A stretch of 64,000 nt of DNA, taken from positions 124,001 through 188,000 of IMG/VR virus record IMGVR_UViG_3300037805_000644; one strand, written 5' to 3'. The notes below the pieces were generated by a model that worked only from the letters and a program-made list of their open reading frames with translations, had not been told where the DNA came from and did not search any database. Position 1 is the first letter of the stretch. Each line of letters begins with the position of its first letter. The translations under genes were made by a program, and so were the position numbers. This document shows, piece by piece, positions 10,134 through 25,781 of this stretch.

Positions 10134-11576
10134 CTAGCCCACCAACTCGCTGACCCTCCCCCTCAACCACAGCACATCCGCCCAAGGGTCGTCGTACCAG
10201 ATGACCAACAGCTTCAACCCCACCTCCGCAGCTCGACGGGCCTTCAACTCGTCGAGCGCCTTCCGACGCTCAAACTCCACCTCCGTCTTGTGCCAGTAAG
10301 GCACGAACTTTCGGTGCTGTTTCCCGTGGTATTCAATCACCAGGTTGCTGTGCTCGAACCGCCCGTCGAAATACAAGTGGTAGCCCGTCTTGGGGTTCAC
10401 GATCTCAGGGTGCCACCACTCCCAGGCGTAAGGCTCACCCAGGATCTCGGCGATGGAATCTAACACCCGCTTCTGCGTTGCCAGCCGGTTCCGTGTCGTC
10501 AGACCCAGATTCTTGCAGTACCGAAGCACGGACTGCCCTGAACACCCCAGACTGAATGCTGCCAGCGCCACCTGCACCCGTCCCTTGGCGTCCTTGAAAG
10601 GGGACAGATCCGCCGCAGTGAGGTGGAGCTTGTGCGTGGGGAACACCATCACCCCGTCAGCAAACAAGGGGGCGTTGGGGTACTTGGAACGGTAATCCAG
10701 TCCTGGGTGCTCTGCGCCTAAGAGGTGGCCTGTCAGGCTCAACCCCTTCCACCCACACTCTCGACACTCGACATAATCGGCAGGCTCCGCCTTCCCTTCC
10801 CAGTAAGCGGCATCCTCCTGGGATTTTTCCGCTGCTCGGCACTCAGGGCATCGATCATCGTGCAGCGAGCCAAAGAACTTAGAGACCTCACGGTCGCGCT
10901 CGCAAGAAGAACAGGTGATCAGCTTCACCCCCTCGTAAGCATCCGCAGGAAGCCCCGCACGAATCGCCTCTGCACGCGTCCCAATGAGCTTCCGGGCTCG
11001 GATGAGCACTCCAGGGTGCGCTGCCCTGTATTCCTTTGCTGTGAGCCCGTGAGCGGCCTTTAGGTGCCCCACAAGGCTGCGGGCACGATGCCCGCACTCG
11101 CGGCACACCACGTAGTCCTCGTCAGGGTCCAGGTCCATCCACAAGGCATCCTCGGAGTCCTGTTCATAAAGGATATGGGCTTCGTCCTCAGCCTCTCGCC
11201 GATGCCGAAAGTGACCTGACAACCCACGCACCCCATCCACCTTCTGCATGCACACCGGACACTCCCGGTCGTACTTGCAGCCGTCGCAGATGAGCGCCGA
11301 ACGCTGCACCTGGTTCGCCTTGAGTGTAAAGCTGCCTTGGCAGGTCTCACACACCACAAGTACGTCACGGAAAATGCGGTTGGTTGCAAGACCCTTGGCG
11401 GTCTTGGCTGCGGCCTTCGCCTGGAGGGTCTTGCCCCTCGCCTTAAAGGCAGTTTCCCCGAACTCACCCTTCCAAATCGGGCGCAGCGTGTTGGGACTCA
11501 TGCCCAGACGCTTGGCGACCGCCTTGAAGGGCTCATCTGTGTGGAAAGCTAAAAGGGCGGTTTGTCGTCGGTCCAT
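10134..11576 (-). CDS. multi-Zn-finger (Ros/MucR-like) protein with C-terminal Vsr/DUF559-like endonuclease; probable free-standing homing endonuclease
   Basis: DYVVCRECG..SLVGHLKAAHGLTAKEYR and related fingers; LYFDG..LVIEYHGKQH..DELK..GLKLLVIWY. Confidence 0.75.
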   Translation of the reverse strand: MDRRQTALLAFHTDEPFKAVAKRLGMSPNTLRPIWKGEFGETAFKARGKTLQAKAAAKTAKGLATNRIFRDVLVVCETCQGSFTLKANQVQRSALICDGCKYDRECPVCMQKVDGVRGLSGHFRHRREAEDEAHILYEQDSEDALWMDLDPDEDYVVCRECGHRARSLVGHLKAAHGLTAKEYRAAHPGVLIRARKLIGTRAEAIRAGLPADAYEGVKLITCSSCERDREVSKFFGSLHDDRCPECRAAEKSQEDAAYWEGKAEPADYVECRECGWKGLSLTGHLLGAEHPGLDYRSKYPNAPLFADGVMVFPTHKLHLTAADLSPFKDAKGRVQVALAAFSLGCSGQSVLRYCKNLGLTTRNRLATQKRVLDSIAEILGEPYAWEWWHPEIVNPKTGYHLYFDGRFEHSNLVIEYHGKQHRKFVPYWHKTEVEFERRKALDELKARRAAEVGLKLLVIWYDDPWADVLWLRGRVSELVG

Positions 11577-11669: not shown

Positions 11670-14600
11670 TTACAAACTTGCCCGTAGGTGGAAAGTCAAA
11701 ACAATATAGAGGAGCGGAAACACAGGAGAATAGAACGCCTCCACCTCGGCCACCGTCGGGTCGTCAGCGGCCACGTTGGCCTTGACCCCCGTGTATGCCG
11801 AGATGATCTGCTGCTTCACCATCTGCTTGAGCATCATGGCGAGGCGGCCTTCGATCTGCGTCAAGATCCCGGGCAGGAACTTGATGCCGATGAACCGCTC
11901 CAGGACGGCCCGGCTCTGGCGCTGGACCTCATCGGAGATCATACGCACCGTCGGGACCTTCGTGAGCACGTTGCTCATATCGGTCGTCAGGCCGTGGCGG
12001 ACTCGGAGGTACGGCGGGCGCTCCTCCATGAGAATCACGCCCTTCTGGGCCACCTGGTTCATCTGAACCGCGTCGAGCCGGGTTGCAAGCTGGCTGAAAC
12101 CAACCAGGCGGCGACCCGTCCACGGGACAGCAACATCCACGTTCGGGGACACCACCGAGCCCGCGAGGGCCGCTGCGAGCATCGGGCCATCGACCAGGTG
12201 CTCCTTGGTGGTGTTGAACGCGTCGGTGAGCTGCACGATGGCCATGCTCGGGTACACGAGCCGCATGCGGTCCGAGTTCAAGAGCTGGGCCAGATCGCCC
12301 GCATCCTTGGGGGTGCGGCCTGCCGACATGCCGATGATGCTGGTCCGCTCCGAGCGGTACCGGATGCTCGACTGGATGCTGTTGGACCGGCTCAGGATCT
12401 GGTACAGCTCGGTCGAGTCGCCCCGCAACGGGGTGATGATGTCCGGGGTCACCTGACCGGGGAGGACGCCCTCCAGGTCGGTGATGGCATCACGGTATGA
12501 CTCGATGGAGGCGTAGTTGCTACCCTCCTCACGCTGGACCTGCTTGATGCCCACCAGGACGGCCCCGTTGAGGGTCGCCAGGAAGGACGCGAGGGTCACC
12601 GGGTTGTCCGGGTGGATCTCACCGTAAGCCGCCTCGATGGAGGCGACCTTGGTGTAGAACGCCGTCGAGAAGTCATCCTTGGAGTACGTGTACGTGGTGT
12701 AGTACACGTCACCGTTCAAGGGCTCATTCCCGCCTCGCTCATGGGTGCTCACCAGGGCCGTGTCACCGACTGCCATGCCCAGCGTGTTGGCCACCTTCAT
12801 CTCCAGACCCTTGAGGGCCAGGATAGGCAGGTTGGCATCCGTGCTGACGGTGCGGCTGATGCCGAACCGGAACGTGGCGTTGGCACCCGTCGGGTAAGCC
12901 ACCCAGGGGCCCGTCGGGTTGCTCTGCCAACCACGGGGGAGAACCGTGAAGGTCAAGCCCGTGACGGCATCCCGGTAGGTCTGACCCACCACACCATCGG
13001 AGCCGGTGCCGTTATTCAGCACCGAGTCAGCGGCCGAACCGGAACCCGTGGGCTGGTTCGAGGAGACGAAGAAGCCATCAAGACCGGCCTCACCGACCGC
13101 ACCATCGAGGTCCACGGCATCCACGCCCGTCCCAGGGAACAGCCAGGACTGGTTGACCACGGCAGCAACCGTCGGGTCACGCAGCTCAACGATGGAGCTG
13201 GTGCCGAGGCTGAGGCTCTGGAGGAACAGGAAGTCGTTACCCGCCGAGTCCTCGGCAACCCGGGCAAGACCCAGGCTGGCGAACATCTCGTTCGGGTTCG
13301 GGTTGACCGCCGTGAAGTCCAGGATCCAGGTGCCGAAGGTGGCGTGGCGGTTCTCGTTGAGAGCCGAAGCCAGTGCCTGCACCGACGGGATATCCCGCTG
13401 AGCAAGGTCACCCTCGGTGAAGCCCAAGACGCCTGCGCTGGAGCCACCGGTGATCTCCACCAGGGAGGTCACCTGCGACGTGGCCGAGCTGATCTCGATC
13501 CCTGCGCCAACCTGGTACACGATGCCATTGGCGAACACCGCTGCGGCGTTGGCACCAAACAGGGTGGTGGCACCTGCGATGGCGTCAATGACCTGATCGA
13601 GCACCGAGCCGTTGCCGGTACCCGATGCGGGGCCGAGGTCCGTCGCCGTACCCGCAGCCGAGGAGGTGAACTGCACCGTGATGGAGATCCCATCGAGGGT
13701 GAGTACCAGCTCATCATTGGCAGCTTGCACGCCCGTGCCGTCGTAGAACGTCACCTCGGGCTGGCTGGTGGCCACATCCTGACCGCCAGAGAACCCAATC
13801 TCACCCCGGAGGGTTGCAGGGGTGACCAGAGCCGAGCCGCCCGCGCCAAAGTCACCAGCCGCAAAACCGAAGCGGTCGAGTGCAGAACCTGCACCAACCC
13901 GCAGCTCGATCTGCTCCCCGTCTGCAATGCTGAGGAGCCCTGAGGAGGGGACCAGGCGGTTGCGGAGCGCCACATTGTCGTAAAGGGCACCCGAGGCACC
14001 CACCACCGAGAGCACCTTCGCCACGTCACCAGCACACACGAGGTGTGCCTGACCACTGGCGACAGCGGCACCGGCGGACCAGCCCAAGAGGAGGGCCAGG
14101 TTGTCCGCATCTGCGATGGCTGCGTTGATCAGGGTGAAGTACGCCTGGGTGTCGTCACCAGCCGCACGTACCTTGAGAACCATCCGACCGTCGGCATCTG
14201 CCGTAACCACGCAACCGGCACCGTCGAACGCGGCACCTGCTGCGGTCCAGCCAGCGGCGCCATTGAGGGCGGCCTCAATGGCGGGGGCCAGGTCTGCGGC
14301 GCTGGCGTAGGGGCCAGCACCCAAGGAGATGGCTGCACCGGGGGTGTATGTGCCCGACACGTCACCCACGTAGGTGAACAGGATGTCGCTGAAAGCGGTC
14401 AGGTCCACAGGACCGTTGACCCGCGTGGCACCCTTGTACTGGGCCATGGACTCGGGGTTGTAAACCCGCATCCCGGAGCCGCCGCCCACGTCCGAGGCAG
14501 CGCCCGACCAAGCAGCGACCGTAGCCGTGCGGGTGGCCGAAACATAGCTGGTGATGGTGCGAACATCCCCGGCCCCTGCGGCCATGGCGGGGATGCCGCT

Positions 14601-16973
14601 CACGTCCCCGACAACGACCTCCCAGTTCTCGAAGTACCCGTTGATACCCGAGCCCGGCACCGTCACCGGGATGAGGAACGTGGTCGCGGAACCACCGGCA
14701 TCCGAGCTGAGCTGGACACCGTTGGCGGCCTCGTTGACGGACTCGATGAGGTCGGATGCCGTGGAGGCATTCTGGGCCGGGATGGTTACCGGGACCTCAA
14801 CACCGTCAATGTAAAGGACCAGGTCCTCATTGGCTGCCAGGCTGTAGCTCTGGCCGATGGTGGCACCCGTGCCGCCGTCATAGTCAATCTGCTCACCGAC
14901 CAGGTTGGCCGGGGCACCACCGCTGTGGGTGGTGGGGTTGGTCAGGGGGATACCGCTGACACCCGCGTTCAGCTCGGTGTTATCCAAGCGGATGCGTACC
15001 CGGTCGGACTGGCTGGTGATGAACTCGTAGGGGCTGGCACCAGGCACAGCGAACCGGGCGGGCGTGGCGTCCTTCGACTCGAACTGAACCGTGACGATCT
15101 CATCCACAGGGCCAGTGAACAGGTCACCACCCACGCCCTCGAAGCGGGCGTCCGGGCTCAGCTCAGAGCCCGAAGGCCACTCAACGCTCACACCGAGGAG
15201 GGCAGAACCCTTGTCGCCGGTCGAGAACCCGACGTTGCGGACGGGGCTGCCAGCCTCATCCTCAATGGTGTACTGGCCCGTGCCGCTGGCCCCGATGAGG
15301 CTGGCGGTCAGGGTGTACTCATTGTCGGTCAGCGAGTTGTAGTAGAAGCTGGCGTAAACCGTGGCGCCCGTGGGCACCTCAGCGGCCAACTCGATGATGT
15401 TGCCCTCGACCTTGGTGACCGTGACGGCACCGCGATCCAAGGCGTCCTGCACACCGTAGCCCCAGTATGCATCCACCACATCAGGTCGGTTGACCGGCTG
15501 GTCAATGCGGCCGTTGGAGACGGTCTGGAACAGGCTGGCACCCAGAGGGGTGTTGCGGCCGTTGCCCAAGGTCGGGTCGAATGGAAGCTGGAACAGCTTC
15601 TTGCTCTCAACGGCGGAGCCGCCGGAAGCCTGAACCACCGAGGAGCAGGTGCTCAGGAAAGTCTTGTCATCCACCAGGGTGCCGCTGACCTGGGTGTCGT
15701 CGAACAGCTCAGACCCGGCACTCGTGTTGTCAGCCTCCACCGTCCAGGCGGTGCCCCAGAGGATCTTGTCATCCTTGAGGATGAAATCCGCGCCCTGGTT
15801 GAAGCCGGTGCCGTCAGGCACCTCACCGAGAGCGTTCACCTCAACCACGCTGTTGTGGGCGAGGTAATCGAAGGTGTTCTCCCAGGAGTTGAACCAGTAC
15901 GTCGCTGCTACCGTGGCGCCCGTTGCCGGGGCCTGGGGGAGGGTGATAGCCCGGGTGGAGCCATCCACGCTGGTCGGAATGACCTGGACGCCGTCCACCT
16001 TAACGGTGACGTGGCTCGGGTCGGTCGTGGTCACGCCGCCGTTGGTGCCATCCACGAGGGGGCCCTGGAAAGCGTAAAAGGTCTTGCGGCGGCTGGTGGT
16101 GGCACCTGAGAGCAAGCCCAGGTCCTGGTTGGCCGAGCCGCTGCCGATGGTGATGTCGTTGTCTGCCGACAGGCTCAAGGCACTCTTGCCGAAATGATTG
16201 ATGAAGGTGCCACCCACCAGCGAGCCCAGAGGAGCCGAGCTGATGAGGTTGGAGACCTGCTGCACCGTGTAGGAACCTGCCGTCAGCTCAACGCTGTACT
16301 CGGTGCCGTCCACGGTGGCGATCAGGACGTTGTTGCCGGGGGTGACGACATTGCCGTCCCCATCGAGCACGTCAGCACGCAGGGCGACGACCTCGGTGCC
16401 GGCATCTTGGGCGTTCACGTCGGAGATGCCCGAGATCGCCAGGATGAGGGCGGTGTCCACAGAGACCTGGTCGCTCAAGTCGTCGGTGACGAGCGTGTCG
16501 GTGCGGTTGAAGAAGTACGTGATCCGCACATCATCCGTCGCCAGGGGGGCCTGGGCCAGCTCCACGATGCCGTTGGCACCGTCCACCGACAGGACCACGA
16601 TGGGGAGCCCGTTGATGGTGGCGGAGACATCGGATCGGCTGTTCGTGATGGTCCCGTTACCGGAGCCGTTCACGAGAGGCAGGTCACGAACCTGGAGCCG
16701 GGTGAGCACGCCATCCCAGTTGCCCAGGGTGATCTCACCGGTACCTGAGATCGCAGCGACGGCGCGGCCGGAGGTGTCCTCCTTGACCTTGCGCTGGTCG
16801 ATGGTGGCGGAGCTACCGCGAACCACTTCGAGGTTCCGCTGAACCAGGAACTCGTTGCCCTCGCCAATGAAGACGGGGATCTTGATGGTGTCGAGACCAC
16901 CCTGAATGGGGTTCTCAAACTGCGTCCGGGAGTACGGAGCGGGAGGGGCGTAGTTGTTGCCGGGGAAAGCCAT
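11670..16973 (-). CDS. contractile tail sheath protein, very large (1767 aa)
   Basis: N-terminal YAPPAPYSRT..IPVFIGEG; sheath C-terminal domain (VRHGLTTD..VRMISDEV..FIG..VEAFYSPVFPLLYIVLTF). Confidence 0.9.
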   Translation of the reverse strand: MAFPGNNYAPPAPYSRTQFENPIQGGLDTIKIPVFIGEGNEFLVQRNLEVVRGSSATIDQRKVKEDTSGRAVAAISGTGEITLGNWDGVLTRLQVRDLPLVNGSGNGTITNSRSDVSATINGLPIVVLSVDGANGIVELAQAPLATDDVRITYFFNRTDTLVTDDLSDQVSVDTALILAISGISDVNAQDAGTEVVALRADVLDGDGNVVTPGNNVLIATVDGTEYSVELTAGSYTVQQVSNLISSAPLGSLVGGTFINHFGKSALSLSADNDITIGSGSANQDLGLLSGATTSRRKTFYAFQGPLVDGTNGGVTTTDPSHVTVKVDGVQVIPTSVDGSTRAITLPQAPATGATVAATYWFNSWENTFDYLAHNSVVEVNALGEVPDGTGFNQGADFILKDDKILWGTAWTVEADNTSAGSELFDDTQVSGTLVDDKTFLSTCSSVVQASGGSAVESKKLFQLPFDPTLGNGRNTPLGASLFQTVSNGRIDQPVNRPDVVDAYWGYGVQDALDRGAVTVTKVEGNIIELAAEVPTGATVYASFYYNSLTDNEYTLTASLIGASGTGQYTIEDEAGSPVRNVGFSTGDKGSALLGVSVEWPSGSELSPDARFEGVGGDLFTGPVDEIVTVQFESKDATPARFAVPGASPYEFITSQSDRVRIRLDNTELNAGVSGIPLTNPTTHSGGAPANLVGEQIDYDGGTGATIGQSYSLAANEDLVLYIDGVEVPVTIPAQNASTASDLIESVNEAANGVQLSSDAGGSATTFLIPVTVPGSGINGYFENWEVVVGDVSGIPAMAAGAGDVRTITSYVSATRTATVAAWSGAASDVGGGSGMRVYNPESMAQYKGATRVNGPVDLTAFSDILFTYVGDVSGTYTPGAAISLGAGPYASAADLAPAIEAALNGAAGWTAAGAAFDGAGCVVTADADGRMVLKVRAAGDDTQAYFTLINAAIADADNLALLLGWSAGAAVASGQAHLVCAGDVAKVLSVVGASGALYDNVALRNRLVPSSGLLSIADGEQIELRVGAGSALDRFGFAAGDFGAGGSALVTPATLRGEIGFSGGQDVATSQPEVTFYDGTGVQAANDELVLTLDGISITVQFTSSAAGTATDLGPASGTGNGSVLDQVIDAIAGATTLFGANAAAVFANGIVYQVGAGIEISSATSQVTSLVEITGGSSAGVLGFTEGDLAQRDIPSVQALASALNENRHATFGTWILDFTAVNPNPNEMFASLGLARVAEDSAGNDFLFLQSLSLGTSSIVELRDPTVAAVVNQSWLFPGTGVDAVDLDGAVGEAGLDGFFVSSNQPTGSGSAADSVLNNGTGSDGVVGQTYRDAVTGLTFTVLPRGWQSNPTGPWVAYPTGANATFRFGISRTVSTDANLPILALKGLEMKVANTLGMAVGDTALVSTHERGGNEPLNGDVYYTTYTYSKDDFSTAFYTKVASIEAAYGEIHPDNPVTLASFLATLNGAVLVGIKQVQREEGSNYASIESYRDAITDLEGVLPGQVTPDIITPLRGDSTELYQILSRSNSIQSSIRYRSERTSIIGMSAGRTPKDAGDLAQLLNSDRMRLVYPSMAIVQLTDAFNTTKEHLVDGPMLAAALAGSVVSPNVDVAVPWTGRRLVGFSQLATRLDAVQMNQVAQKGVILMEERPPYLRVRHGLTTDMSNVLTKVPTVRMISDEVQRQSRAVLERFIGIKFLPGILTQIEGRLAMMLKQMVKQQIISAYTGVKANVAADDPTVAEVEAFYSPVFPLLYIVLTFHLRASL

Positions 16974-17366: not shown

Positions 17367-17702
17367 TCATTCCTCTTGCCCCCTGTCGAATCGAGCCCGG
17401 AGCCGTCGGTACTCTGCGTGGTCCTGAGCTTCCTTCTCCGCCAGGGCCTCAGCAGCCTTACGTCCCCGGAATGCCTTTTTCGCCTCAGCGAGATCGAAGG
17501 GGACCTTGTCGCCCACGGGGTAAACGTAAACCTCATCCACGCTGGACTCATCGTTACCCAGGCGGTCTCCCTCTTCCAGAAAAGCATGTACCTCCTGGTG
17601 CAGAGTCTCAGGAGTGGCCTCCACAAAATCGAAAGCCTGGCCACACCCAATGGTGTAGTCGCACCCACCATTTTGCTCCATAATCACAATGTACTGCATC
17701 AC
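17367..17702 (-). CDS. hypothetical protein
   Basis: Overlaps stop of upstream Zn-ribbon gene; GGCDYTIGCG motif. Confidence 0.7.
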   Translation of the reverse strand: MMQYIVIMEQNGGCDYTIGCGQAFDFVEATPETLHQEVHAFLEEGDRLGNDESSVDEVYVYPVGDKVPFDLAEAKKAFRGRKAAEALAEKEAQDHAEYRRLRARFDRGQEE

Positions 17703-18130
17703 GGATTCTTCTTCCCCAGGCCCTTCTTCATGGCCCGGCTGTTGATGACGTTTGCCCGCACGGCAAACCCCTTCTCGTCTTTGGTGATCGTCCGGTACTG
17801 GCCGTCAGGGTCCCGGGTGATGAGGTTGGGGTCAGCCCCGTCCCGCACCAGCCGCCGCTTCGCTTTCTGACGCTCCTCGATGACCGCCATGCTCTGCTCG
17901 GTGGACTTGCCAATCACCCGGTCGATGTGGGTGTCCAGGCCGTGGATGCCCGTGTTCTGGGGGCCGGGCCCATCCACGTCCTTATTGAAATGCCCACTCA
18001 CGGTGTTAGGCATGGCCCGAGGGGCGGCCTCGTCGCAGCCGGGGCAAGGCATCGGGTCCTTGGACTTGGACGCCTTGTTGGCGGCAGAGAACTGCACGCC
18101 GCATTCGCATTGGTACTTGTAAGTGGGCAA
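17699..18130 (-). CDS. FmdB-family Zn-ribbon protein
   Basis: MPTYKYQCECG..CPGC; TTG start with GGAG RBS. Confidence 0.8.
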   Translation of the reverse strand: MPTYKYQCECGVQFSAANKASKSKDPMPCPGCDEAAPRAMPNTVSGHFNKDVDGPGPQNTGIHGLDTHIDRVIGKSTEQSMAVIEERQKAKRRLVRDGADPNLITRDPDGQYRTITKDEKGFAVRANVINSRAMKKGLGKKNP

Positions 18131-18475: not shown

Positions 18476-19684
18476 TCAACGGATAATGGGGTACCCTCGC
18501 CCGACCTGGTAAAAGGGGTCCTGCACAGACTCAAGGCCCAACCCCACCTTGGCTTTGATGTTCCCCTCATGTCCGTCCAGCTCATCATCGGACAAGGAGG
18601 CGATGTAGTTGGCTTGCTCTTGCGTCAGGGGGGTGGCCTGGCGCAGGGAGACGTTCAGTGGCACAAAGGCTGCCCACTCCGTCTCGACGTTCAGAGAGAA
18701 GCTGGAGTTGAAGAAATAATCGTTCCCCGTCTCATCATAGATCTCCTCAGACTCCCCCCCAATGCTGATGTTCATGACCTCCAGGCCCTCCGAGGAGAGC
18801 CGCCCGCGAGCCGAGCCAAACAGGTACATCACCGAGTTGTCGGCGATCTCCCGCTGGTCGTAAACGTCTCGGGCAAACACCTCGAACTCCATGGCCATCT
18901 CCCACCGACCCCCGTACTCCATGGCAGAGGCCATGCGGGTGGCCTCCACGACCACGGCAAGCTGGTCCTTATCCTGCACCCTCCGACCAAACGCCAACAC
19001 CACGCCGGGGATGGCGGTGTTGTTGGCGTGACGCTCTCGGATGGGGTAAGGGCCACTGCTCTCGGCCACATAACGGTAATCGGCCTGGATCCAGCGGCCA
19101 TTGCTCAAGGGGGTGTTGAAATTGACGACACCGGTGGGTGCCCCGGAACCAGGGTCGGTCTCCAAGGTGTAATTGGTACCTGCCACCAGCTTGTACCGGG
19201 CGGGCATCTCGTACAGCCTGAGAGACCCGCTCAGTGGTGGGGTCTGTAGCATCCCGGTGGTGGCGTCCGTCATCATCACCTGCTCTTGGTAAGCATTGAG
19301 GAGGGGGTCCACATAGAAGACGTTCTTGTTGTTCTCTTCCCGTACATCTAGGTAATAGACGCCAGGGGGGCTGGGGAAAGTGCCCCCGTTCGCCTGGATG
19401 GCCCTGCCGTCCTCACGGACCCACTCCACGGAATACCCAGGCTTGTTGTTGGCCTTGGCCAGGTGGCAGTGGCTGTAAATGATGCCCTTGTAGTTGTCCG
19501 CTGAGAGAGGGGAGTGCGTCCCCCCAGTGGACTTAACGACGATGCCCCTCTGGGGGCGCTCCCGGAAGCTGTACTTGCCCTGGATGTTCTCGGGCAGGTC
19601 TTCAAACTTGGGGTGTGTCGTCCAGTACGTGCGGAGTTCCTGGGTGAAACGCCGGGTCAGGTAATCGGTGAGGTGGAAAAACAC
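18476..19684 (-). CDS. virion structural protein, tail-terminator/tail-completion-like
   Basis: Position near sheath; YGGRWEMAMEFEVFARDVYDQREIAD; class II motif upstream. Confidence 0.5.
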   Translation of the reverse strand: MFFHLTDYLTRRFTQELRTYWTTHPKFEDLPENIQGKYSFRERPQRGIVVKSTGGTHSPLSADNYKGIIYSHCHLAKANNKPGYSVEWVREDGRAIQANGGTFPSPPGVYYLDVREENNKNVFYVDPLLNAYQEQVMMTDATTGMLQTPPLSGSLRLYEMPARYKLVAGTNYTLETDPGSGAPTGVVNFNTPLSNGRWIQADYRYVAESSGPYPIRERHANNTAIPGVVLAFGRRVQDKDQLAVVVEATRMASAMEYGGRWEMAMEFEVFARDVYDQREIADNSVMYLFGSARGRLSSEGLEVMNISIGGESEEIYDETGNDYFFNSSFSLNVETEWAAFVPLNVSLRQATPLTQEQANYIASLSDDELDGHEGNIKAKVGLGLESVQDPFYQVGRGYPIIR

Positions 19685-19717
19685 GGGTAGCCTCCAAAGT
19701 CCTACAGAGAGGACTGG

Positions 19718-19732
19718 ATAGGCTACCCACCG
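19718..19732 (-). promoter_or_regulatory. class II promoter-like motif
   Basis: CGGTgggtagcCTAT. Confidence 0.7.
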
Positions 19733-19776: not shown

Positions 19777-20103
19777 TCACGGGACCAGCACGGATCCTGA
19801 GGACTTCTCCTCGATGTGCCCGAGGACTTGCGGCACGACCAGAAGGACGCACTTCTGGTCCAGGCCCTCCAGGCCCTCCATCTCGATCTGCCCGGCACTC
19901 AGATAAGCGACCCGCTGGCCGGGCTTGAATCCGGTTGGGACCACCTTGCCGTTGTCGAAGGTACGGCCGGAGCCCACCTCAACCACCAGGCCCGTCTCAT
20001 AGCTCTTGGTCTGGATGCCCCGGGGGATGATGAGCCCCTTTTGGGTTTCGCTCTCGATGTCGGGTGCGACCAGAATTCGGTTACCATTGGGGATAAAACG
20101 CAT
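19777..20103 (-). CDS. groES: co-chaperonin GroES/Cpn10
   Basis: PNGNRILV..TQKGLIIP..GLVVEVGSGR..G. Confidence 0.85.
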   Translation of the reverse strand: MRFIPNGNRILVAPDIESETQKGLIIPRGIQTKSYETGLVVEVGSGRTFDNGKVVPTGFKPGQRVAYLSAGQIEMEGLEGLDQKCVLLVVPQVLGHIEEKSSGSVLVP

Positions 20104-20146: not shown

Positions 20147-20545
20147 TCAGGTAGTCACCACCGGAGCCTCATGGGGGCCCCGGCCAGGGAAAGTCAGCCG
20201 GTCCGCCAGGAGCTGGGTCCACCCCGTAAACTCATGGGTCATGGAATTCAGGGTCCTCGGTGAAGGACCCGTGGCGTCAAACAGGGTGGCAGGGTTGCCG
20301 CACGGGTTGTGGCGGCTCGGGCTTGCATCAGGCCCCTCCAGGATGAAGGCTGCCCAGAGAGCCTTGTGAGCACTGCCCACACCCCACACCTCGACCAGCT
20401 CCAGCACCTCTTCGTCCTTGGCCCGGAACTCCCAACAATTACGCCCGGCTGTCCCGTACTGTTCGAGGTCATAGGGGGTGAACTCAGCCACCATCCGCTG
20501 AGCCGTCAAGAAATCGCCCTTGGGGACGTAAGTGCGTGCCTTCAT
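20147..20545 (-). CDS. hypothetical protein
   Basis: TGATG overlap with the actin-like gene. Confidence 0.55.
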   Translation of the reverse strand: MKARTYVPKGDFLTAQRMVAEFTPYDLEQYGTAGRNCWEFRAKDEEVLELVEVWGVGSAHKALWAAFILEGPDASPSRHNPCGNPATLFDATGPSPRTLNSMTHEFTGWTQLLADRLTFPGRGPHEAPVVTT

Positions 20546-21564
20546 CAGTCGTCCTCGTGCTCAATGATAGCCTGGGTAAGCATCCCGTTGGCCACTGCAT
20601 TCAGAGGGTCTGAGGCGTGTCGGATCTCCGACACCTTGAGGGGGAACCGCTTCTGCCGCTTCTTGAACTCTTTCTCGAAGAGCTGCACGAAATTCCCAGC
20701 CTTGCTCGTACCGCCTGAGATCACCAGGGGGATCGGCTTGGGCATCTCAAACTGCCCCTGGATCTGCTTGAAACGCTTGGCGATCTCGTCGAGGGTGTAG
20801 CGGATCAGTTCCTTGTAATAGAAAGAGACGGCCTCCTCCTCACGCCCTTGCGGGTTGAGCAGGTCCACCCCAGCCTCCTTGAGGGCACAGATACGGGCCT
20901 GGGTGGACCCGAGGGACCCCGCCACCCCCGCATCAATCCAGTCCCCACCCCGGGCCACTGAGAACGCCAGACCTTCGATGGTATTGATGGCCAGTGCCAC
21001 GTTGGTCATGCCGGCCCCGAAACTCAGGGCGATGCCGCTGAACCCGTCGCCAGAGCACTCGGAGAAAATGATGGACATCGCCTCGTTGGCGGGCCAGGGG
21101 GTGTAGCCGCACTCCTCCACGATCCGCTCAAACACACCCTTGTGGTAAATCACGTCCCGGTCAGGTCGATCAATGGGTGCTGCGGGGACCGAGAAATAGC
21201 AGTGCTCATCAGGCACCCGAGGCGGGCCGAGGATCTGCTTGATCATCAAGCCCAGCACCTCCAGTGCCTCTACCTCACCGGCGGAGACCAGGCCCGCCTG
21301 GAGGGGTCGGCGTGCCTCTTTGCCAAACACGTTGGCTGTCTCCATCGCAGCGTCCCCCAAGAGGAGAACGTCCTCACCTCGCTCAACGAAACTGGTGCCC
21401 GAGAGCTTGAGCATCTTCTTGGCGGAGGGGGGGAGGTCCAGGAAAGCATCCCGCATCCGGGTGTGCTCTACCGCAGTACCCGTGTGCCGAGCAGCCACCA
21501 GGTTCATGGTGCCGATATCGAGGCCAACCCCCAAAGGGGTCTTGGTGTCGTTCTTTGCAGGCAT
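20545..21564 (-). CDS. actin-fold ATPase, volactin-like
   Basis: GLDIGTMN (phosphate 1), NEAM (connect 1), SFGAGMTN (phosphate 2), GGDWID, SGGTS (adenosine), DPLNAVANG (connect 2). Confidence 0.85.
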   Translation of the reverse strand: MPAKNDTKTPLGVGLDIGTMNLVAARHTGTAVEHTRMRDAFLDLPPSAKKMLKLSGTSFVERGEDVLLLGDAAMETANVFGKEARRPLQAGLVSAGEVEALEVLGLMIKQILGPPRVPDEHCYFSVPAAPIDRPDRDVIYHKGVFERIVEECGYTPWPANEAMSIIFSECSGDGFSGIALSFGAGMTNVALAINTIEGLAFSVARGGDWIDAGVAGSLGSTQARICALKEAGVDLLNPQGREEEAVSFYYKELIRYTLDEIAKRFKQIQGQFEMPKPIPLVISGGTSKAGNFVQLFEKEFKKRQKRFPLKVSEIRHASDPLNAVANGMLTQAIIEHEDD

Positions 21565-21573
21565 TCGGTGTCC

Positions 21574-22167
21574 TTACTTCTTTTTCTTTCGGGCAGCCTT
21601 GAGGGCTGCGGTGGCGTCACCCACACCTGAGTCTGAGGACTCGGACTTGCTGGTTCGGATATCACCCTTCACCTCCCGGGCAACGAGATTGCCGGGGATG
21701 AACATGGGAGTATCGTCCTGCACCTTACCCACCGAGGGTGGAGTTATGGGGGGTGTTGCACCAGAATGGTGAACCACTTGGGGCTGCATGTTGCTGAGGG
21801 CTGCCAACAGGCGCGACTCCATCTCAACAAGCTGGGCCTTGACCTCGTCAGCCACCTCTTTGCGGGTGAGCCCTGGAGGGATCCGATCCACCACCGCCTG
21901 AACCACGGGTGGCACCTGGGTTACCGGCTGGGGGTTCAGGCGGGGCCTCGCCGGCTCAGGGGTTGGGAGCATCGAAGCGGGTCGCTTCTGGTTGTACCTC
22001 TTGATGGGGCGGACGGCCACGGCACCATTGCGGCGGGCATTGTACAGATCGGAGGAGGCTTCGGCATCCGCGTACGGAATGCAGATCTTCTTTTTCCGAG
22101 TCAGGATCAAACCCAGATCGGGCAGCTCGATCCTTCGGCAAATGCAGGTAAGCTCAGCTTCAATCAT
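21574..22167 (-). CDS. hypothetical protein, candidate actin partner
   Basis: Start MIEAEL at 22167 overlaps upstream stop (ATGA); Pro-rich linker, short coiled coil, basic tail AALKAARKKKK. Confidence 0.65.
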   Translation of the reverse strand: MIEAELTCICRRIELPDLGLILTRKKKICIPYADAEASSDLYNARRNGAVAVRPIKRYNQKRPASMLPTPEPARPRLNPQPVTQVPPVVQAVVDRIPPGLTRKEVADEVKAQLVEMESRLLAALSNMQPQVVHHSGATPPITPPSVGKVQDDTPMFIPGNLVAREVKGDIRTSKSESSDSGVGDATAALKAARKKKK

Positions 22168-22778
22168 TGTGTAGGGTCCCCCTGGAGGAGGTGCTTCACC
22201 ACCTCCTGGGTCAGGCGCTGGGCGCATCGTTCTCTCCCCTTGCGGATCCCCCGCTGCATGAACGTAAACTTGGCGATGCCCGGGTGGATCCATGCATCTC
22301 TGGTCTCAAAGGGGGCGAACCTCAGCACCACACCACCACCTTTCTGCTTGAGAGGCACCACCAGCGGCAGGCGCTCACCCTTGGAGATCTTGCCTGATTG
22401 CTTCATGCCCCTCTCGCGTTCGCCTTTGGTGAGCTTGAACTTCTCAGGGTGGTCTTCCTTGTGTTTCTGGGTCATCCAGGTCATCCGCCGGCTGGGGATG
22501 TCCCCTGAGGCCAGCTCAACCATCCCATACCAGGTGGATTGGATCTCGATGGTGGATCCACCTCGGATGCGGTAGCTCCAGGACTTAGGGAAATCGGCAC
22601 CCCCGTCCGGGTCCCGCACAGACCACCCCCGCTTGGCGAAGTCTTTGAGACCTTCCTCAACCACAGACGCAATGAGGCATTTGGCTAGGTCCTCCAGCAC
22701 CTCGGGGGTGATGGGGATACTAGACATCTTCGACCACGGCTTACCGTAAACACCACGTACTCGGCGAGTATCACTCAT
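22164..22778 (-). CDS. putative neck/tail-completion protein
   Basis: Basic protein, VLRFAP..WIHPGIAKFTFMQRG C-terminus; structural context. Confidence 0.45.
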   Translation of the reverse strand: MSDTRRVRGVYGKPWSKMSSIPITPEVLEDLAKCLIASVVEEGLKDFAKRGWSVRDPDGGADFPKSWSYRIRGGSTIEIQSTWYGMVELASGDIPSRRMTWMTQKHKEDHPEKFKLTKGERERGMKQSGKISKGERLPLVVPLKQKGGGVVLRFAPFETRDAWIHPGIAKFTFMQRGIRKGRERCAQRLTQEVVKHLLQGDPTQ

Positions 22779-22859: not shown

Positions 22860-23294
22860 ATGAACGTGAACATCGCAAGTGTCAAGGCCCTCTACACCAA
22901 CCCTGAGTTTCTGGTCCTCCTTGCTGTGCTGGAGCTGGCTCAGGAGGAATCCGCCCGACTCCGAGCCCTGGTTGACGCCTACTCCCAGCCCATTCTGGAC
23001 AAGGCGGGGCTGGTGGACGATGAGGGAAACCCCATCACCGACCTGCGCCGGGCTTGGCTCTGCCAGGACGGCGATGCCTGCGACGCCTACTATGCTGCCC
23101 GCCTCCAGGCCAACAACGACAACGGGTTCGACCTGGGGGATAGCTGCCCGGCTCTCGTCGCTGAGAGCAGTGTCACTGACGCTGAGAATGCCTTGATTGC
23201 TGCTGCCAACACCCACTATGGGCTGCCCACCATCTACAACCTGGACCTGCGGGCAAAGTACCTGGACTTGCTCACCAACCCACCCCGCCACTAA
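22860..23294 (+). CDS. hypothetical protein
   Basis: Single plus-strand gene behind a class I motif within the structural region. Confidence 0.75.
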   Translation: MNVNIASVKALYTNPEFLVLLAVLELAQEESARLRALVDAYSQPILDKAGLVDDEGNPITDLRRAWLCQDGDACDAYYAARLQANNDNGFDLGDSCPALVAESSVTDAENALIAAANTHYGLPTIYNLDLRAKYLDLLTNPPRH

Positions 23295-24292
23295 CCCCAC
23301 TCCTCTCGCAGGGGATGCCAAAGCCGCAGCATCCGCTCACCGGCGGCAATACGGGTGGCGGACCTTCCCAGATGAGCCAGGGCCCACCCCGAATGGATCT
23401 CTGATTCCGAGTACCGCACCACTGAATACCCCAAGGTATAAAACCCTTGTGCTGTCTGCACGTCATCCGCAATCCGGGCACGGGCATCCCCGAAAATGTA
23501 GCCAGGGCCATGGAAAGCTTCCCCATCACACAGAACAACCAGCTTTTGCTTGCCGAGAATAACTTTGATGTCTGCTTCCCGAGGTCTCCACACCCCCTCG
23601 AAATCAAGGCTAATCCAATCGTTCAAGACATGGGAATACCCCTGAGCGGCCAGAGTTTCCCCAAAGCCCCTCTCCAATGCGGATCCGCCACCAAATCTAC
23701 GTTTGATTTCTGCGGCTTTCTGCTCTGGGGTCATGGCGTTCCATGCCTGGTGTGCTTTTTGGATGTTAGCTGTGCAGGCCACCTTTTTCCGCAGGGCTGC
23801 CAATTCTCGGTAGCCCCCGACACCAAAATGATCTTCTGCGATGGCCTTGAAAGTTTTGTAAGGGATCCCGAGCCTCCGGGTAAGCCCGCCCACCGTCTCC
23901 CCCGCCCTGTAACCAGAGGCCACTTCACGGTAAAGGGGGTCCCCTTTCTGCCAGTTGCAGATGTCTTCGGGTTGGGGTCGGGAGATGACCTCGGGCAGGG
24001 TCGGGTGCTGCACCTGGGTTTTCTCATACCTGCGCTTGCCCAGCCGATTGCGGAGTTCCTGGCAGGAAGGGCACCTTTTACGGTGAACCTTTTTGGGGTC
24101 CTGAACCTCCCAAACCCCGCCACACTTACGACATTCGGGGTACCCCCGATACTGGGCACGACCCTGCCGCCACCGCTCTCGGAGGGCCAGGTGCTCGGGA
24201 TCGGGGTTGAACCGGAAATGCTGAGACAACGCTCGGTTGTTCCTTACGGACTTACCGCACACCTCACAGGAACCAAGAAACGACCCCATCAC
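23291..24292 (-). CDS. Zn-finger/HTH protein with Vsr/DUF559-like endonuclease; probable homing endonuclease
   Basis: CEVCG..ALSQHF, CRKC/CPSC; ADIKV..LVVLCDGEAFHG..D..LGYSVVRYSESEI. Confidence 0.7.
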   Translation of the reverse strand: MMGSFLGSCEVCGKSVRNNRALSQHFRFNPDPEHLALRERWRQGRAQYRGYPECRKCGGVWEVQDPKKVHRKRCPSCQELRNRLGKRRYEKTQVQHPTLPEVISRPQPEDICNWQKGDPLYREVASGYRAGETVGGLTRRLGIPYKTFKAIAEDHFGVGGYRELAALRKKVACTANIQKAHQAWNAMTPEQKAAEIKRRFGGGSALERGFGETLAAQGYSHVLNDWISLDFEGVWRPREADIKVILGKQKLVVLCDGEAFHGPGYIFGDARARIADDVQTAQGFYTLGYSVVRYSESEIHSGWALAHLGRSATRIAAGERMLRLWHPLREEWG

Positions 24293-25781
24293 AAACCTCC
24301 ACTACCAGCCGGTACACCAAGTACAGGCTGATAGGGGAAATACCGTAGCTGGTGTTCTCCCAAACCTTGGTGCGCCCGCGCTTCTCATTGTGGTCTGGGA
24401 CGGAGCCCTTCTCAGTCTGGAGCGGGGTGACCACCTCGGGCCCTTCGGGGTAGGTGGGCCCTGCCCAGCCTTCATCCTGATCGTAAGACCGCTCACCGGT
24501 CACCGGCATCCGGGGGTACATCGGAGCAGGCTCACCCGACTTCGGGCGGGTCTCGGGCCAGGGGAGTTCCGTGGTCCCGTCGATGGGCATCCGGTACCGG
24601 ATGTCGCCCTCAGCGAGATATCCGATGTTGAAATGCTGCTGGAGCAGGTTACCCCGGTGCGTGGGCCTCCGCACTGGACCCACGCTGTACCGCTCATTGG
24701 TCTGCTTGACGATGAAATCCCGCTGGGTGAGGAGAGGAGAGGGACCCGTCCACACCTCGTACTGGTGTTCCTTGTGCCGCCCCAGGGAGGTCTGGGAGAT
24801 GCGGCGCTCCGCGTCGTCAGGGGCGATGATGGTCTCAAAGGGGCCGTCGTACCCACCAACGAATCCTGTCCCATAGCAGGTCAGGCAGTTGTTCTCAGGC
24901 TGCTTGCTGTACTCCAGCGCACGCACATCCTCACGGGTGCATTCGCAGGGTGATCCACAATGCTTGCGGATAAACAGCTTCACCCGTTCACCACCACACC
25001 CGAGGATCCACTGGTTGCGGCGCACCGCCTCTTCCCAGATGTAATCCATGCTCTCAACCTCGGCGGTTGAGAGTGGTTTGGTTTGGTTGAGGGGGGTCTC
25101 AGTGTAGCCGGAAGGGGTCTCGGAGTCGATGACCACAGTGGTCAGCCGATACCAGTTCCACTTGTCTAGGCCCGAGGCCACGTAGTTGGCGGGGGCCCAG
25201 TATTCGACACGAACAACGGAATCCGCTGTCGGGATGACAGCGTGCTCTACGCTCTCGGTCCCCACCTCAAACCGTGCCTGGTTGATGAGGGTCACCTCAC
25301 CCGCAGGGCCAAACACCTCCGAAACGGGGACCTCTACATCATCAATGTAGACGGTCAGGTCAGCAGGGTGGTTGGCGAATGTCGGTTTGTCATAGGGGGC
25401 CGCATCACGCTGCTTGCAGATTCGGCGGGTGGTTCGGAACTGGAACCTGCGATCATTGGGCTTGTCGCCCTTGAAATTCCAGGCGACATCCCACCGCACT
25501 GTCTCTGAGACGAACTGGAGGTCCGTCCGGTCCCGGTAAAACCCGGACCCGATGGGGAACTCGTTGATGCGGTAAAAGGGCCCCCGGTCGGAGCTGTCCG
25601 ACCGATAGACGTTCACACCTACAACGTGATAGGGGGTGTTGCCGGATAGGAGGGTGGGGTTATCCCACCGGAGATCGATCACCCCTGGCAGGTACGGGCT
25701 TACCGCCGCCCCGTCACTGGGAGGGAGGGGGTAGCCCCCCCCACCAAACCCAGAACTCTTAGGATCCCATCCAGCGGCCAT
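24264..25781 (-). CDS. putative neck/head-closure protein with FN3-like N-terminus and Cys cluster
   Basis: IDLRWDNP..GVNVYRS; GGERVKLFIRKHCGSPCEC..CLTCYGTGFVGGY. Confidence 0.5.
   Translation of the reverse strand: MAAGWDPKSSGFGGGGYPLPPSDGAAVSPYLPGVIDLRWDNPTLLSGNTPYHVVGVNVYRSDSSDRGPFYRINEFPIGSGFYRDRTDLQFVSETVRWDVAWNFKGDKPNDRRFQFRTTRRICKQRDAAPYDKPTFANHPADLTVYIDDVEVPVSEVFGPAGEVTLINQARFEVGTESVEHAVIPTADSVVRVEYWAPANYVASGLDKWNWYRLTTVVIDSETPSGYTETPLNQTKPLSTAEVESMDYIWEEAVRRNQWILGCGGERVKLFIRKHCGSPCECTREDVRALEYSKQPENNCLTCYGTGFVGGYDGPFETIIAPDDAERRISQTSLGRHKEHQYEVWTGPSPLLTQRDFIVKQTNERYSVGPVRRPTHRGNLLQQHFNIGYLAEGDIRYRMPIDGTTELPWPETRPKSGEPAPMYPRMPVTGERSYDQDEGWAGPTYPEGPEVVTPLQTEKGSVPDHNEKRGRTKVWENTSYGISPISLYLVYRLVVEVCDGVVSWFL
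24331..24345 (-). promoter_or_regulatory. class II promoter-like motif for the endonuclease gene, inside the 3' end of the upstream ORF
   Basis: CGGTatttcccCTAT. Confidence 0.65.

Follow-up and report, generated by a model that had tools for sequence, protein, structure and literature searches.

Do huge bacteriophages build an actin cytoskeleton of their own, and if so, what does it hold? This question was raised by a locus in a window of 64,000 nt (the whole stretch of DNA analysed here), which comes from a huge-phage contig of at least 223 kb. The initial annotation proposed that a volactin-like actin gene and a coupled candidate adaptor gene lie inside a string of virion-assembly genes. 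It further proposed that a late-expressed filament positions or transports capsids or tails, or reshapes the host. We found that the observation itself is correct. The interpretation is supported in part: family, phage origin, gene pairing and a conserved neck/tail setting held, other points had to be refined, and nothing here supports host reshaping.

The gene block and its parts

To verify the locus, we read the open reading frames and their junctions on the minus strand. The 204-aa gene overlaps the adaptor start by ATGA, the adaptor stop (TAA) is followed by 9 nt and the ATG of the actin, and TGATG joins the actin stop to the next ORF, all as first described. The adaptor start giving 197 aa, rather than the longest ORF (239 aa), is supported by the N-termini of homologues (MxEAxIxC...). 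The described adaptor features are also in the sequence: a Pro-rich stretch (aa 62-89), a helical stretch (aa 101-127) and a basic C-terminal helix (aa 180-197).

Table 1. Features of the actin locus, with positions in the window
Positions	Strand	Feature	Observations
24264..25781	-	Conserved 505-aa protein at the upstream end of the block, function unknown	Syntenic in 61-66 loci; only phrog_2806 (unknown function), E 1.4e-4; no PDB match
22164..22778	-	Conserved 204-aa protein, function unknown (possible neck or tail-completion protein)	About 1.0-1.35 kb upstream of the actin in 70 of 80 loci; no Pfam match
21574..22167	-	Adaptor, 197 aa	No Pfam domain
22003-22167	-	Adaptor, N-terminal beta/alpha domain	Model pLDDT 80
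21901-21984	-	Adaptor, Pro-rich linker	
21787-21867	-	Adaptor, helical stretch	
21682-21717	-	Adaptor, 'DDTPMFIPGNLV' motif	
21577-21630	-	Adaptor, C-terminal amphipathic basic helix 'SGVGDATAALKAARKKKK'	
20545..21564	-	Volactin-family actin-like ATPase, 339 aa	
21502-21525	-	Actin, phosphate-1 motif	
21073-21087	-	Actin, catalytic-Glu region	
20998-21024	-	Actin, phosphate-2 motif	
20932-20955	-	Actin, GGDWID	
20701-20724	-	Actin, adenosine motif	
20147..20545	-	132-aa ORF overlapping the actin stop, accessory, no known family	No Pfam or PHROG hit; a homologue in only one other locus, in a different position
19777..20103	-	GroES-like co-chaperonin, accessory insertion between the actin and the terminator-like gene	Cpn10 E 6.8e-12 and phrog_3188; among 80 loci only in the window's own contig and one other (L039)
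18476..19684	-	402-aa neck / tail-terminator-like protein	AF2 model pLDDT 83; downstream of the actin in 64 of the loci
17699..18130	-	Conserved 143-aa protein with N-terminal CxxC...CxxC zinc-ribbon-like motif, between the terminator-like and sheath-like genes	Syntenic in 60 of 80 loci
11670..16973	-	1767-aa protein with a tail-sheath-like C-terminal part (aa 1420-1762)	phrog_2839 'tail sheath' E 6.6e-27; syntenic in 66 of 80 loci

To determine which of these genes belong together, we compared 80 loci, and found a syntenic block in the order 505 aa, 204 aa, adaptor, actin, 402 aa, 143 aa, 1767 aa. The block is not one continuous virion string, as first described, because head genes lie about 34 kb away behind nucleotide-metabolism genes. 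GroES and the 132-aa ORF are accessory insertions seen in only 2 of 80 loci each. Over 40 loci, the actin is the most conserved gene of the block, with a median identity of 64% against 31-52% for its neighbours.

We next examined the genes flanking the pair. A Foldseek search with the predicted structure of the 402-aa protein matched phage 812 neck chain 8qkh_G (E 3e-8) and the neck chains of E217, Pa193, XM1 and Pam3 (8fvh_M, 9b42_G, 7kjk and 8hdr_G) with probability 1.0, and lambda gpU (3fzb) with probability 0.96. TM-scores are low because of extra domains. The fold matches myophage neck and terminator proteins and supports the earlier label of this gene as tail-completion-like. For the 204-aa protein, labelled neck-like in the initial annotation, one of 44 family members hits PHROG 5 (Neck1) at E 0.008 and a profile search of the PDB found nothing; that label is not verified. 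Profile searches of the 505-aa family and of the 1767-aa protein against the PDB were also without a match. In PHROGs, no family was found for the actin, the adaptor, or the 204-, 132- and 402-aa genes.

An actin-like protein of the volactin family

The HMM search and phylogeny named beforehand as a way to check the volactin assignment were both carried out. The 339-aa protein matches Pfam Volactin (PF25216) over profile positions 3-321 of 321, with E 3.4e-69 and 234.2 bits against a cut-off of 35. The only other Pfam hit at E<=10 is FtsA at 0.061, and no ParM, MreB or actin model was found at that level. We identified more than 2,174 homologues. The top 120 are all at 63% identity or more, and all 120 carry PF25216.

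The nucleotide-binding motifs of the actin fold (ASKHA) are intact. GLDIGTMN is located at aa 14-21, ANVFGKEARRP at 77-87, FSVPAAPID at 124-132, SFGAGMTNV at 181-189, ARGGDWID at 204-211, and the adenosine motif VISGGTSK at 281-288. The key residues (D16, G18, T19, N21, E161, G183, G185, D208, D211, G284, G285, T286) are invariant in 26 homologues. The motifs align with those of E. coli MreB, but hhalign against MreB gave a probability of only 2%, so the alignment is not evidence of closeness.

To place the protein among its relatives, we built a tree with haloarchaeal, Methanothrix, Magnetococcales and Acidobacteriota members and with MreB as outgroup. The phage proteins form a separate, monophyletic clade. 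Its nearest cellular relatives are bacterial (Magnetococcales), not haloarchaeal as the motif comparison had first suggested. Haloarchaeal members are 35-36% identical over 96% of the length. The protein is therefore of the same family as volactin (VolA, HVO_2015) of Haloferax volcanii, but it has neither the haloarchaeal lineage nor the chromosomal cell-shape context of VolA, and its role is presumably in infection.

A search of the PDB with the single sequence gave only noise. The profile gave a marginal and partial match to the magnetosome actin MamK (5jyg, 5ljv; E 1e-3, 21 bits, residues 68-241), the best-scoring solved structures, and no ParM at E<=1. MamK is likewise a filament that organises discrete cargo through adaptor proteins, but there is no magnetosome context here.

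These results bear on the reading that the protein is a non-polymerising ASKHA ATPase, a grouping named in advance as one that would count against a filament. In that reading it would serve as an assembly chaperone or enzyme for neck or tail parts (Hsp70-like logic), with the upstream protein as its client-delivery or co-factor subunit. The actin fold is shared with Hsp70 and other non-filament ATPases, the gene lies among assembly genes and, in this window, next to a GroES homologue, and sequence alone cannot prove polymerisation. However, no Hsp70 or sugar-kinase model matched even at E<=10, the nearest solved relative by profile is the filament former MamK, the family's characterised member forms dynamic filaments in vivo (PMC10869688), and GroES is not part of the module. 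We consider this reading improbable.

Coupling of the adaptor to the actin

The pairing could have failed if the upstream gene did not co-occur with the actin, an outcome stated beforehand as counting against it. A word-based search for the adaptor found only 3 hits, so a profile search was used. It revealed a fast-evolving family with 1,220 representatives at 50% clustering, all 180-290 aa. The adaptor lies upstream of the actin on the same strand in 72 of 72 testable phage loci, adjacent in 65, often with overlapping stop and start. It is absent from all 32 comparison loci, namely 31 loci of cellular relatives and one 595-kb phage locus (L002). In an alignment of 47 adaptors, the only strongly conserved parts are the N-terminal domain (NTD) and two short C-terminal motifs.

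To examine whether the adaptor depends on the actin, we collected 50 loci independently through the 402-aa gene. Nine of them lack the actin, so it is dispensable there or moved elsewhere, while the 204-aa gene is retained next to the 402-aa gene in loci that lost it. In four of the nine the adaptor is gone, and in five it keeps the NTD and linker but has lost both C-terminal motifs. Overall, the motif is present in 81 of 82 adaptors with an actin (35 of 36 of those not used to build the scoring matrix) and in 0 of 7 without. On the tree of the 402-aa protein, the actin-less loci are nested among actin-bearing ones, needing 2-7 changes. Taken together, this data indicates that the upstream gene is a real, coupled partner.

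An adjacent, co-oriented adaptor is the hallmark of ParM/ParR, AlfA/AlfB and AlpC/AlpA of the Corynebacterium glutamicum prophage CGP3, which serves viral DNA (PMC4446434, PMC5539076). In these systems a mobile-element-encoded actin-like ATPase has a co-transcribed adaptor that links filaments to a cargo, whereas here the adaptor lies upstream. The pair could thus be a DNA-positioning system, in which the adaptor binds a centromere-like site, or DNA in general through its basic tail, and the filaments move or anchor replicating or packaging-ready genomes. The adaptor ends in a lysine/arginine run that could bind nucleic acid, and very large genomes may need positioning. However, the predicted NTD (beta4-alpha2-beta1) has no match to ribbon-helix-helix or helix-turn-helix DNA binders. 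Its best PDB match has E 0.4, and a search of BFVD gave only weak matches to small uncharacterised myophage proteins. Within 17-27 kb, scanned in this window only, we found no iteron or centromere-like array but only chance-level two-copy repeats, and the overlap with the preceding gene leaves no non-coding site upstream of the adaptor. The ATPase has no detectable sequence relation to ParM-type actins, the module sits in neck/tail genes of huge lytic-type phages rather than near replication functions, and the NTD-only adaptor persists without the actin. We therefore regard a DNA-positioning role as unlikely.

Proposed role of the pair

We propose that the two genes form a phage cytoskeletal module set into the neck/tail morphogenesis block of a large clade of uncultured huge phages, a reading that we hold to be about as likely as not. 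Like VolA, the actin most likely polymerises into nucleotide-dependent filaments in the infected cell, although filament formation was shown only for the H. volcanii protein and not here. The adaptor would be its tether. In this view, the short C-terminal amphipathic basic helix (consensus LDDAxxALKALRKKK), probably together with the preceding PxFIPxxI motif, docks on the actin, and a flexible Pro-rich linker connects it to the small NTD that binds the cargo. No complex of the actin with the adaptor peptide was modelled, and there is no direct evidence of binding.

Since the NTD survives beside the neck genes when the actin is lost, and the pair travels with the 204-aa gene, the cargo is most likely a virion part (neck, tail or filled head). 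This is a guess from gene context only, as the NTD has no significant structural match. The filaments would then position, collect or move assembly intermediates late in infection. This would be an actin-based counterpart of what PhuZ, a cytomotive filament of nucleus-forming jumbo phages that organises late steps of virion production, does for capsids in Chimalliviridae (PMC7950403, PMC13359090), although PhuZ has a tubulin fold and comes from unrelated phages, and a dedicated adjacent adaptor gene is present here. Gene order in phages is only a loose guide to function or timing, no promoter or expression data exist, and scans for promoters and terminators found promoter-like sites below the shuffled expectation. 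What our analysis demonstrates is the family membership, the intact motifs, strong purifying selection, the gene pairing, the joint loss of the actin and the adaptor's C-terminal motifs, and the structural nature of the flanking genes, whereas polymerisation, direct binding, the cargo and the timing are inferences. The high conservation of the actin is as expected of a polymer with many contacts.

A host-takeover cytoskeleton was also considered, in which the actin reshapes the host cell or its envelope (size, shape, division block) to make room for very large virions, and the adaptor links it to a host structure. The host of the phage was not pursued. Volactin acts in cell-shape transitions in Haloferax (PMC10869688), and cellular relatives are encoded next to membrane or FimV-like proteins. 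But the phage adaptor has no transmembrane or FimV-like part, its NTD stays linked to the neck genes, and nothing in the context points to envelope functions. This is the least likely of the alternatives.

Phage-built cytoskeletons are known from one tubulin (PhuZ) and a few ParM-like actins that serve DNA, and a phage actin with an adaptor is already known from AlpC/AlpA. New here are the actin family, the adaptor and the genomic context. Reviews of large-phage cell biology up to 2026, and the paper that released the two related huge-phage genomes, do not mention this actin of a different, barely studied family, although it is nearly a core gene of a cosmopolitan clade of huge phages (contigs up to 618 kb, thousands of metagenomic copies) and more conserved than the virion genes around it. 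If it forms filaments that handle virion parts, spatially organised assembly would be a wider trait of very large phages than the nucleus-forming lineage alone. The co-lost C-terminal helix also gives a concrete, testable candidate for a volactin-binding motif, an open point in archaeal cell biology.

A broader and rather doubtful possibility is that an upstream partner is the rule for the whole volactin family. Cells and phages would then use one short amphipathic peptide to hook volactin filaments onto interchangeable anchors: membrane-spanning proteins in haloarchaea, Methanothrix and Magnetococcales, a FimV-like polar landmark in Magnetococcales, and a virion-linked domain in huge phages. 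A matrix built from the C-termini of the small Magnetococcales upstream proteins did not retrieve phage adaptors (1 in the top 50, the chance level), and the idea therefore remains a lead only. If true, it would name the unknown factor that holds Haloferax volactin filaments to the membrane by their tips, and it would make this the first actin-based virion-assembly or transport system in a bacteriophage. In haloarchaea, a membrane protein is encoded upstream of the volactin gene, where the phages have their specific soluble adaptor. The Magnetococcales relatives lie beside FimV-like, M90 peptidase and PLP-enzyme genes, not magnetosome genes.

Family assignment and distribution of the phage actin

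To examine the assignment of the ORF as an actin, we compared its product with Pfam, and found that it matches one model, Volactin (PF25216), from profile position 3 to 321 of 321 (E 3.4e-69, 234 bits against a gathering score of 35). When the threshold was raised to E 10, the only other hit was FtsA at 0.061. The actin-fold motifs listed in the initial annotation are all present, and their key residues are invariant in an alignment of 26 homologues: D16, G18, T19 and N21 of phosphate-1; E161; G183 and G185 of phosphate-2; D208 and D211; and G284, G285 and T286 of the adenosine motif. Read on the minus strand, the gene junctions are exactly as had been described: ATGA, then TAA + 9 nt + ATG, then TGATG. 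The adaptor start at 22167 (197 aa), rather than the longer ORF, is supported by the shared N-termini of homologues. The original observation is confirmed and is far beyond chance.

The window carries several phage genes, including a major head protein (phrog_2522, E 1e-50), a head maturation protease, PhoH, a helicase, homing endonucleases and nucleotide-metabolism genes. The actin is 100% identical to one on IMG/VR contig IMGVR_UViG_3300037805_000644 (222,939 bp). Among deposited phage genomes, only two uncultured huge phages carry a relative: LR745208 (485 kb, 64% identity) and LR756511 (595 kb, 29%). A word-indexed search found more than 2,174 homologues, of which the best 120 are all at least 63% identical and sit on contigs of up to 402 kb. 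IMG/VR holds 180 relatives on contigs of up to 618 kb. The phage-type actin was also found at 62-68% identity on four contigs assigned to MAGs of Thermoplasmata, an uncultured bacterium, Actinomycetota and Legionellales (loci L003, L004, L005 and L006). L004, L005 and L006 show the same phage gene order, while L003 has too little flanking sequence to tell. These look like phage contigs binned by mistake into cellular genomes. One 297-kb contig, IMGVR_UViG_3300025141_000016, carries two different copies of the trio of 204-aa gene, adaptor and actin about 150 kb apart (loci L084 and L091), indicating either a real duplication or a chimeric assembly of two related phages.

Profile search and phylogeny against other actins had been proposed beforehand as the way to check the family assignment. 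No solved structure is detectable from the single sequence, and a profile reaches only MamK, marginally (E 1e-3, 21 bits, residues 68-241). An hhalign comparison with E. coli MreB aligns the motifs but gives a probability of 2%. True cellular relatives are 30-39% identical. They are about 17 Magnetococcales genomes, Bryobacterales/Terriglobia on megabase contigs, a Bacteriovoracaceae MAG, Methanothrix, a Woesearchaeote, and haloarchaeal megaplasmids at 35-36%, and they lie in ordinary chromosomal contexts. In a maximum-likelihood tree the phage proteins form one clade (SH-aLRT 99), which is sister (90) to Magnetococcales plus two short MAG contigs. Haloarchaeal members lie further out. The LR756511 copy (locus L002) is a separate long branch in another huge-phage lineage, with a different gene context and no adaptor-family gene within 8 kb, which suggests an independent acquisition. 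Thus, the description of the protein as volactin-like is right at family level, but its nearest cellular kin are bacterial.

Gene context and the upstream adaptor

To determine the gene context, we compared 80 IMG/VR loci and found a conserved order: 505 aa, 204 aa, adaptor slot, actin, 402 aa, 143 aa, 1767 aa. The 402-aa protein was modelled with pLDDT 83, and its predicted fold matches myophage neck and terminator proteins: phage 812 neck 8qkh_G at E 3e-8, the E217, Pa193, XM1 and Pam3 necks, and lambda gpU. The 1767-aa protein is unusually long. Only its last 340 or so residues match the tail-sheath PHROG (phrog_2839, E 7e-27), weak DUF2460/DUF4815-like hits lie near aa 320-408, and what the N-terminal 1,400 residues do is open. 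The 204-, 505- and 143-aa proteins could not be named. In 14 divergent loci the terminator-like gene is not within 10 kb downstream, yet the trio of 204 aa, adaptor and actin stays together. Over 40 loci with all seven genes, the actin is the most conserved, with a median identity of 64%, followed by the 505-aa (52%), 402-aa (51%), 1767-aa (50%), 143-aa (41%) and 204-aa (38%) proteins and the adaptor (31%). The pair is therefore embedded in a neck/tail block. However, the head genes lie about 34 kb away behind metabolic genes, so the placement in a single virion-assembly gene string, as initially annotated, is overstated.

The block also carries insertions. GroES and the 132-aa ORF lie between the actin and the terminator-like gene, and each was seen in only 2 of 80 loci: GroES in the window's own contig and locus L039, the 132-aa ORF in the window's own contig and, elsewhere and on the other strand, locus L098. 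The 333-aa ORF is present in only 13 of 80 related loci, and is therefore probably a mobile homing-endonuclease-type insertion.

Features of the window and of related loci (L numbers denote compared loci)
Feature	Location	Strand	Description
Actin	window 20545-21564	-	339 aa, Volactin family
1767-aa protein	window 11670-16973	-	sheath-like C-terminal region
480-aa protein	window 10134-11576	-	ROS/MucR zinc-finger domain combined with an HNH homing-endonuclease-like C-terminus; directly downstream of the sheath-like gene
Hairpin	window 19685-19728		19-nt arms; between GroES and the 402-aa gene
GroES homologue	window 19777-20103	-	insertion
132-aa ORF	window 20147-20545	-	insertion
333-aa ORF	window 23291-24292	-	zinc-finger-like N-terminal repeats (phrog_9929, E 1e-4); overlaps the end of the 505-aa gene
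Divergent phage actin	L002:8001-9020 (LR756511.1)		second volactin-family actin in a huge phage
Loci lacking the actin between the 204-aa and 402-aa genes	L137:6586-6993, L154:6395-6823, L157:6420-6812, L173:5740-6282, L176:6220-6693; also L136, L167, L169, L181		related huge-phage loci
Genes directly upstream of cellular volactin-family actins	L118:2917-3825, L119:2806-3705, L120:2971-3894, L025:5302-5661, L023:5134-5580 and L023:3458-5137 (and the same positions in L007-L031)		membrane-anchored or FimV_N-domain proteins

The adaptor has no Pfam or PHROG family, and a word-based search found only three relatives. However, positional homologues from the loci align into a clear architecture. 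It consists of a conserved N-terminal domain of about 55 aa (MxEAxIxC....IxDLGLxLxRG...S.DL...G.V.V), a variable Pro-rich linker, a variable helical stretch, a short conserved motif D.P.FIP..IV with an invariant proline, an acidic/serine stretch, and a conserved C-terminal amphipathic helix with a basic end (LDDA..ALKALRKKK). A profile of this alignment finds 1,220 cluster representatives at E<=1e-3 and 688 at E<=1e-10, among 1.84 billion. All listed hits are 180-290 aa and nearly all match full length.

A failure of the two genes to co-occur had been set out in advance as evidence against a coupled pair, and we found the opposite. In 72 of 72 phage loci with enough upstream sequence, the adaptor gene is on the same strand as the actin. 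In 65 it is directly adjacent, often with overlapping stop and start. In the other seven (L040/L041, L052, L082, L100, L108, L109) a single inserted gene, encoding an HTH-like protein, a zinc-finger/HNH-like protein or a coiled-coil protein, separates the two, which suggests that the junction is a hot spot for mobile insertions. None of the 32 comparison loci (31 cellular loci and the phage locus L002) has the adaptor gene.

The N-terminal domain models as beta4-alpha2-beta1 with pLDDT 80. It has no PDB match (best E 0.4), and in BFVD it has only weak matches (E about 0.01, TM 0.6-0.7) to small uncharacterised myophage proteins. These results bear on a ParR-like DNA-positioning system, as in AlpC/AlpA (PMC4446434, PMC5539076), which remains a rival explanation. 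It is weakened on four counts: the adaptor, as modelled, lacks a DNA-binding fold, no repeat array was found in 17-27 kb of the window, there is no upstream non-coding DNA, and the context is structural genes.

Loci without the actin and the proposed mechanism

To test the coupling independently of the actin, we searched IMG/VR through the 402-aa gene, which gave 50 loci with at least 5.2 kb of upstream sequence. Forty-one carry the actin and nine do not; whether an actin lies elsewhere on the nine contigs was not checked. In four of the nine, the 204-aa gene is followed by the terminator-like gene with no adaptor gene between them. In the other five, a short adaptor-like ORF of 131-181 aa remains, which keeps the N-terminal domain, the Pro-rich linker and a basic end, but has lost both the FIP motif and the C-terminal helix. 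Scored with a matrix of the helix motif, 81 of 82 distinct adaptors from actin-bearing loci reach the threshold, including 35 of 36 that were not used to build the matrix. None of 7 from actin-less loci does, with scores from -8.7 to 0.9. On the tree of the 402-aa protein, the actin-less loci are nested among actin-bearing ones, and need 7 changes at most parsimony and at least 2 on well-supported branches. The module is therefore ancestral and was lost from this locus more than once. The adaptor's C-terminal motifs go with the actin, while its N-terminal domain stays with the neck genes. This is the strongest evidence here that the two proteins work together and that the C-terminal helix is the actin-facing end.

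The best-supported reading is a filament-forming actin tethered to a cargo, in which the C-terminal helix of the adaptor would dock on the actin and its N-terminal domain would recognise the cargo. Whereas the family membership, the gene pairing and the joint loss are shown here, the remaining steps are inferred. Gene context makes a virion part the most likely cargo. Polymerisation is inferred from family membership, since volactin forms dynamic filaments in vivo (PMC10869688), from the intact catalytic motifs, and from unusually strong conservation. A non-polymerising chaperone-type ATPase cannot be excluded from sequence. The initial interpretation, an actin filament with an adaptor that positions or transports capsids or tails or reshapes the host, is partly supported, and nothing found here supports host reshaping.

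A phage actin with an adaptor is already known from AlpC/AlpA, whereas this actin family, this adaptor, the neck/tail context and the breadth of the clade are new. Full-text searches found volactin discussed only for haloarchaea and no report of an actin in huge or jumbo phages, although the literature covered was incomplete and an earlier mention may exist. The paper that released the two related genomes mentions only PhuZ, and reviews from 2020 and 2026 discuss only tubulin.

Proteins encoded upstream of cellular family members

We found that the genes directly upstream of cellular family members also encode proteins that end in an acidic linker plus a short amphipathic peptide resembling the C-terminal helix of the phage adaptor. 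The haloarchaeal upstream proteins of about 300 aa have N-terminal transmembrane helices and motifs such as VDDAVDGLRQLQ and TVDDQTAKLKELR. The Methanothrix upstream protein is a 120-aa membrane protein ending SLDAVKLMRDLKNKNK. In 14 of the 16 Magnetococcales loci listed, both a small membrane protein (ending SVEDVARKLASMQ) and a FimV_N-domain protein (ending GDVAEAASKLKSM or similar) end in related C-terminal peptides.

To examine this resemblance, the phage motif matrix was scored against 1,371 ORFs of the cellular loci. The reciprocal test, using a matrix built from the small Magnetococcales proteins, did not retrieve phage adaptors, and we therefore treat the resemblance as a lead, not a finding. 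It would fit the published observation that volactin filaments touch the membrane only by their tips, and the authors' call for unknown volactin-binding factors (PMC10869688). In the forward test, five of the six best hits are such upstream neighbours, and the haloarchaeal ones have shuffle p-values of 0.0005-0.0025.
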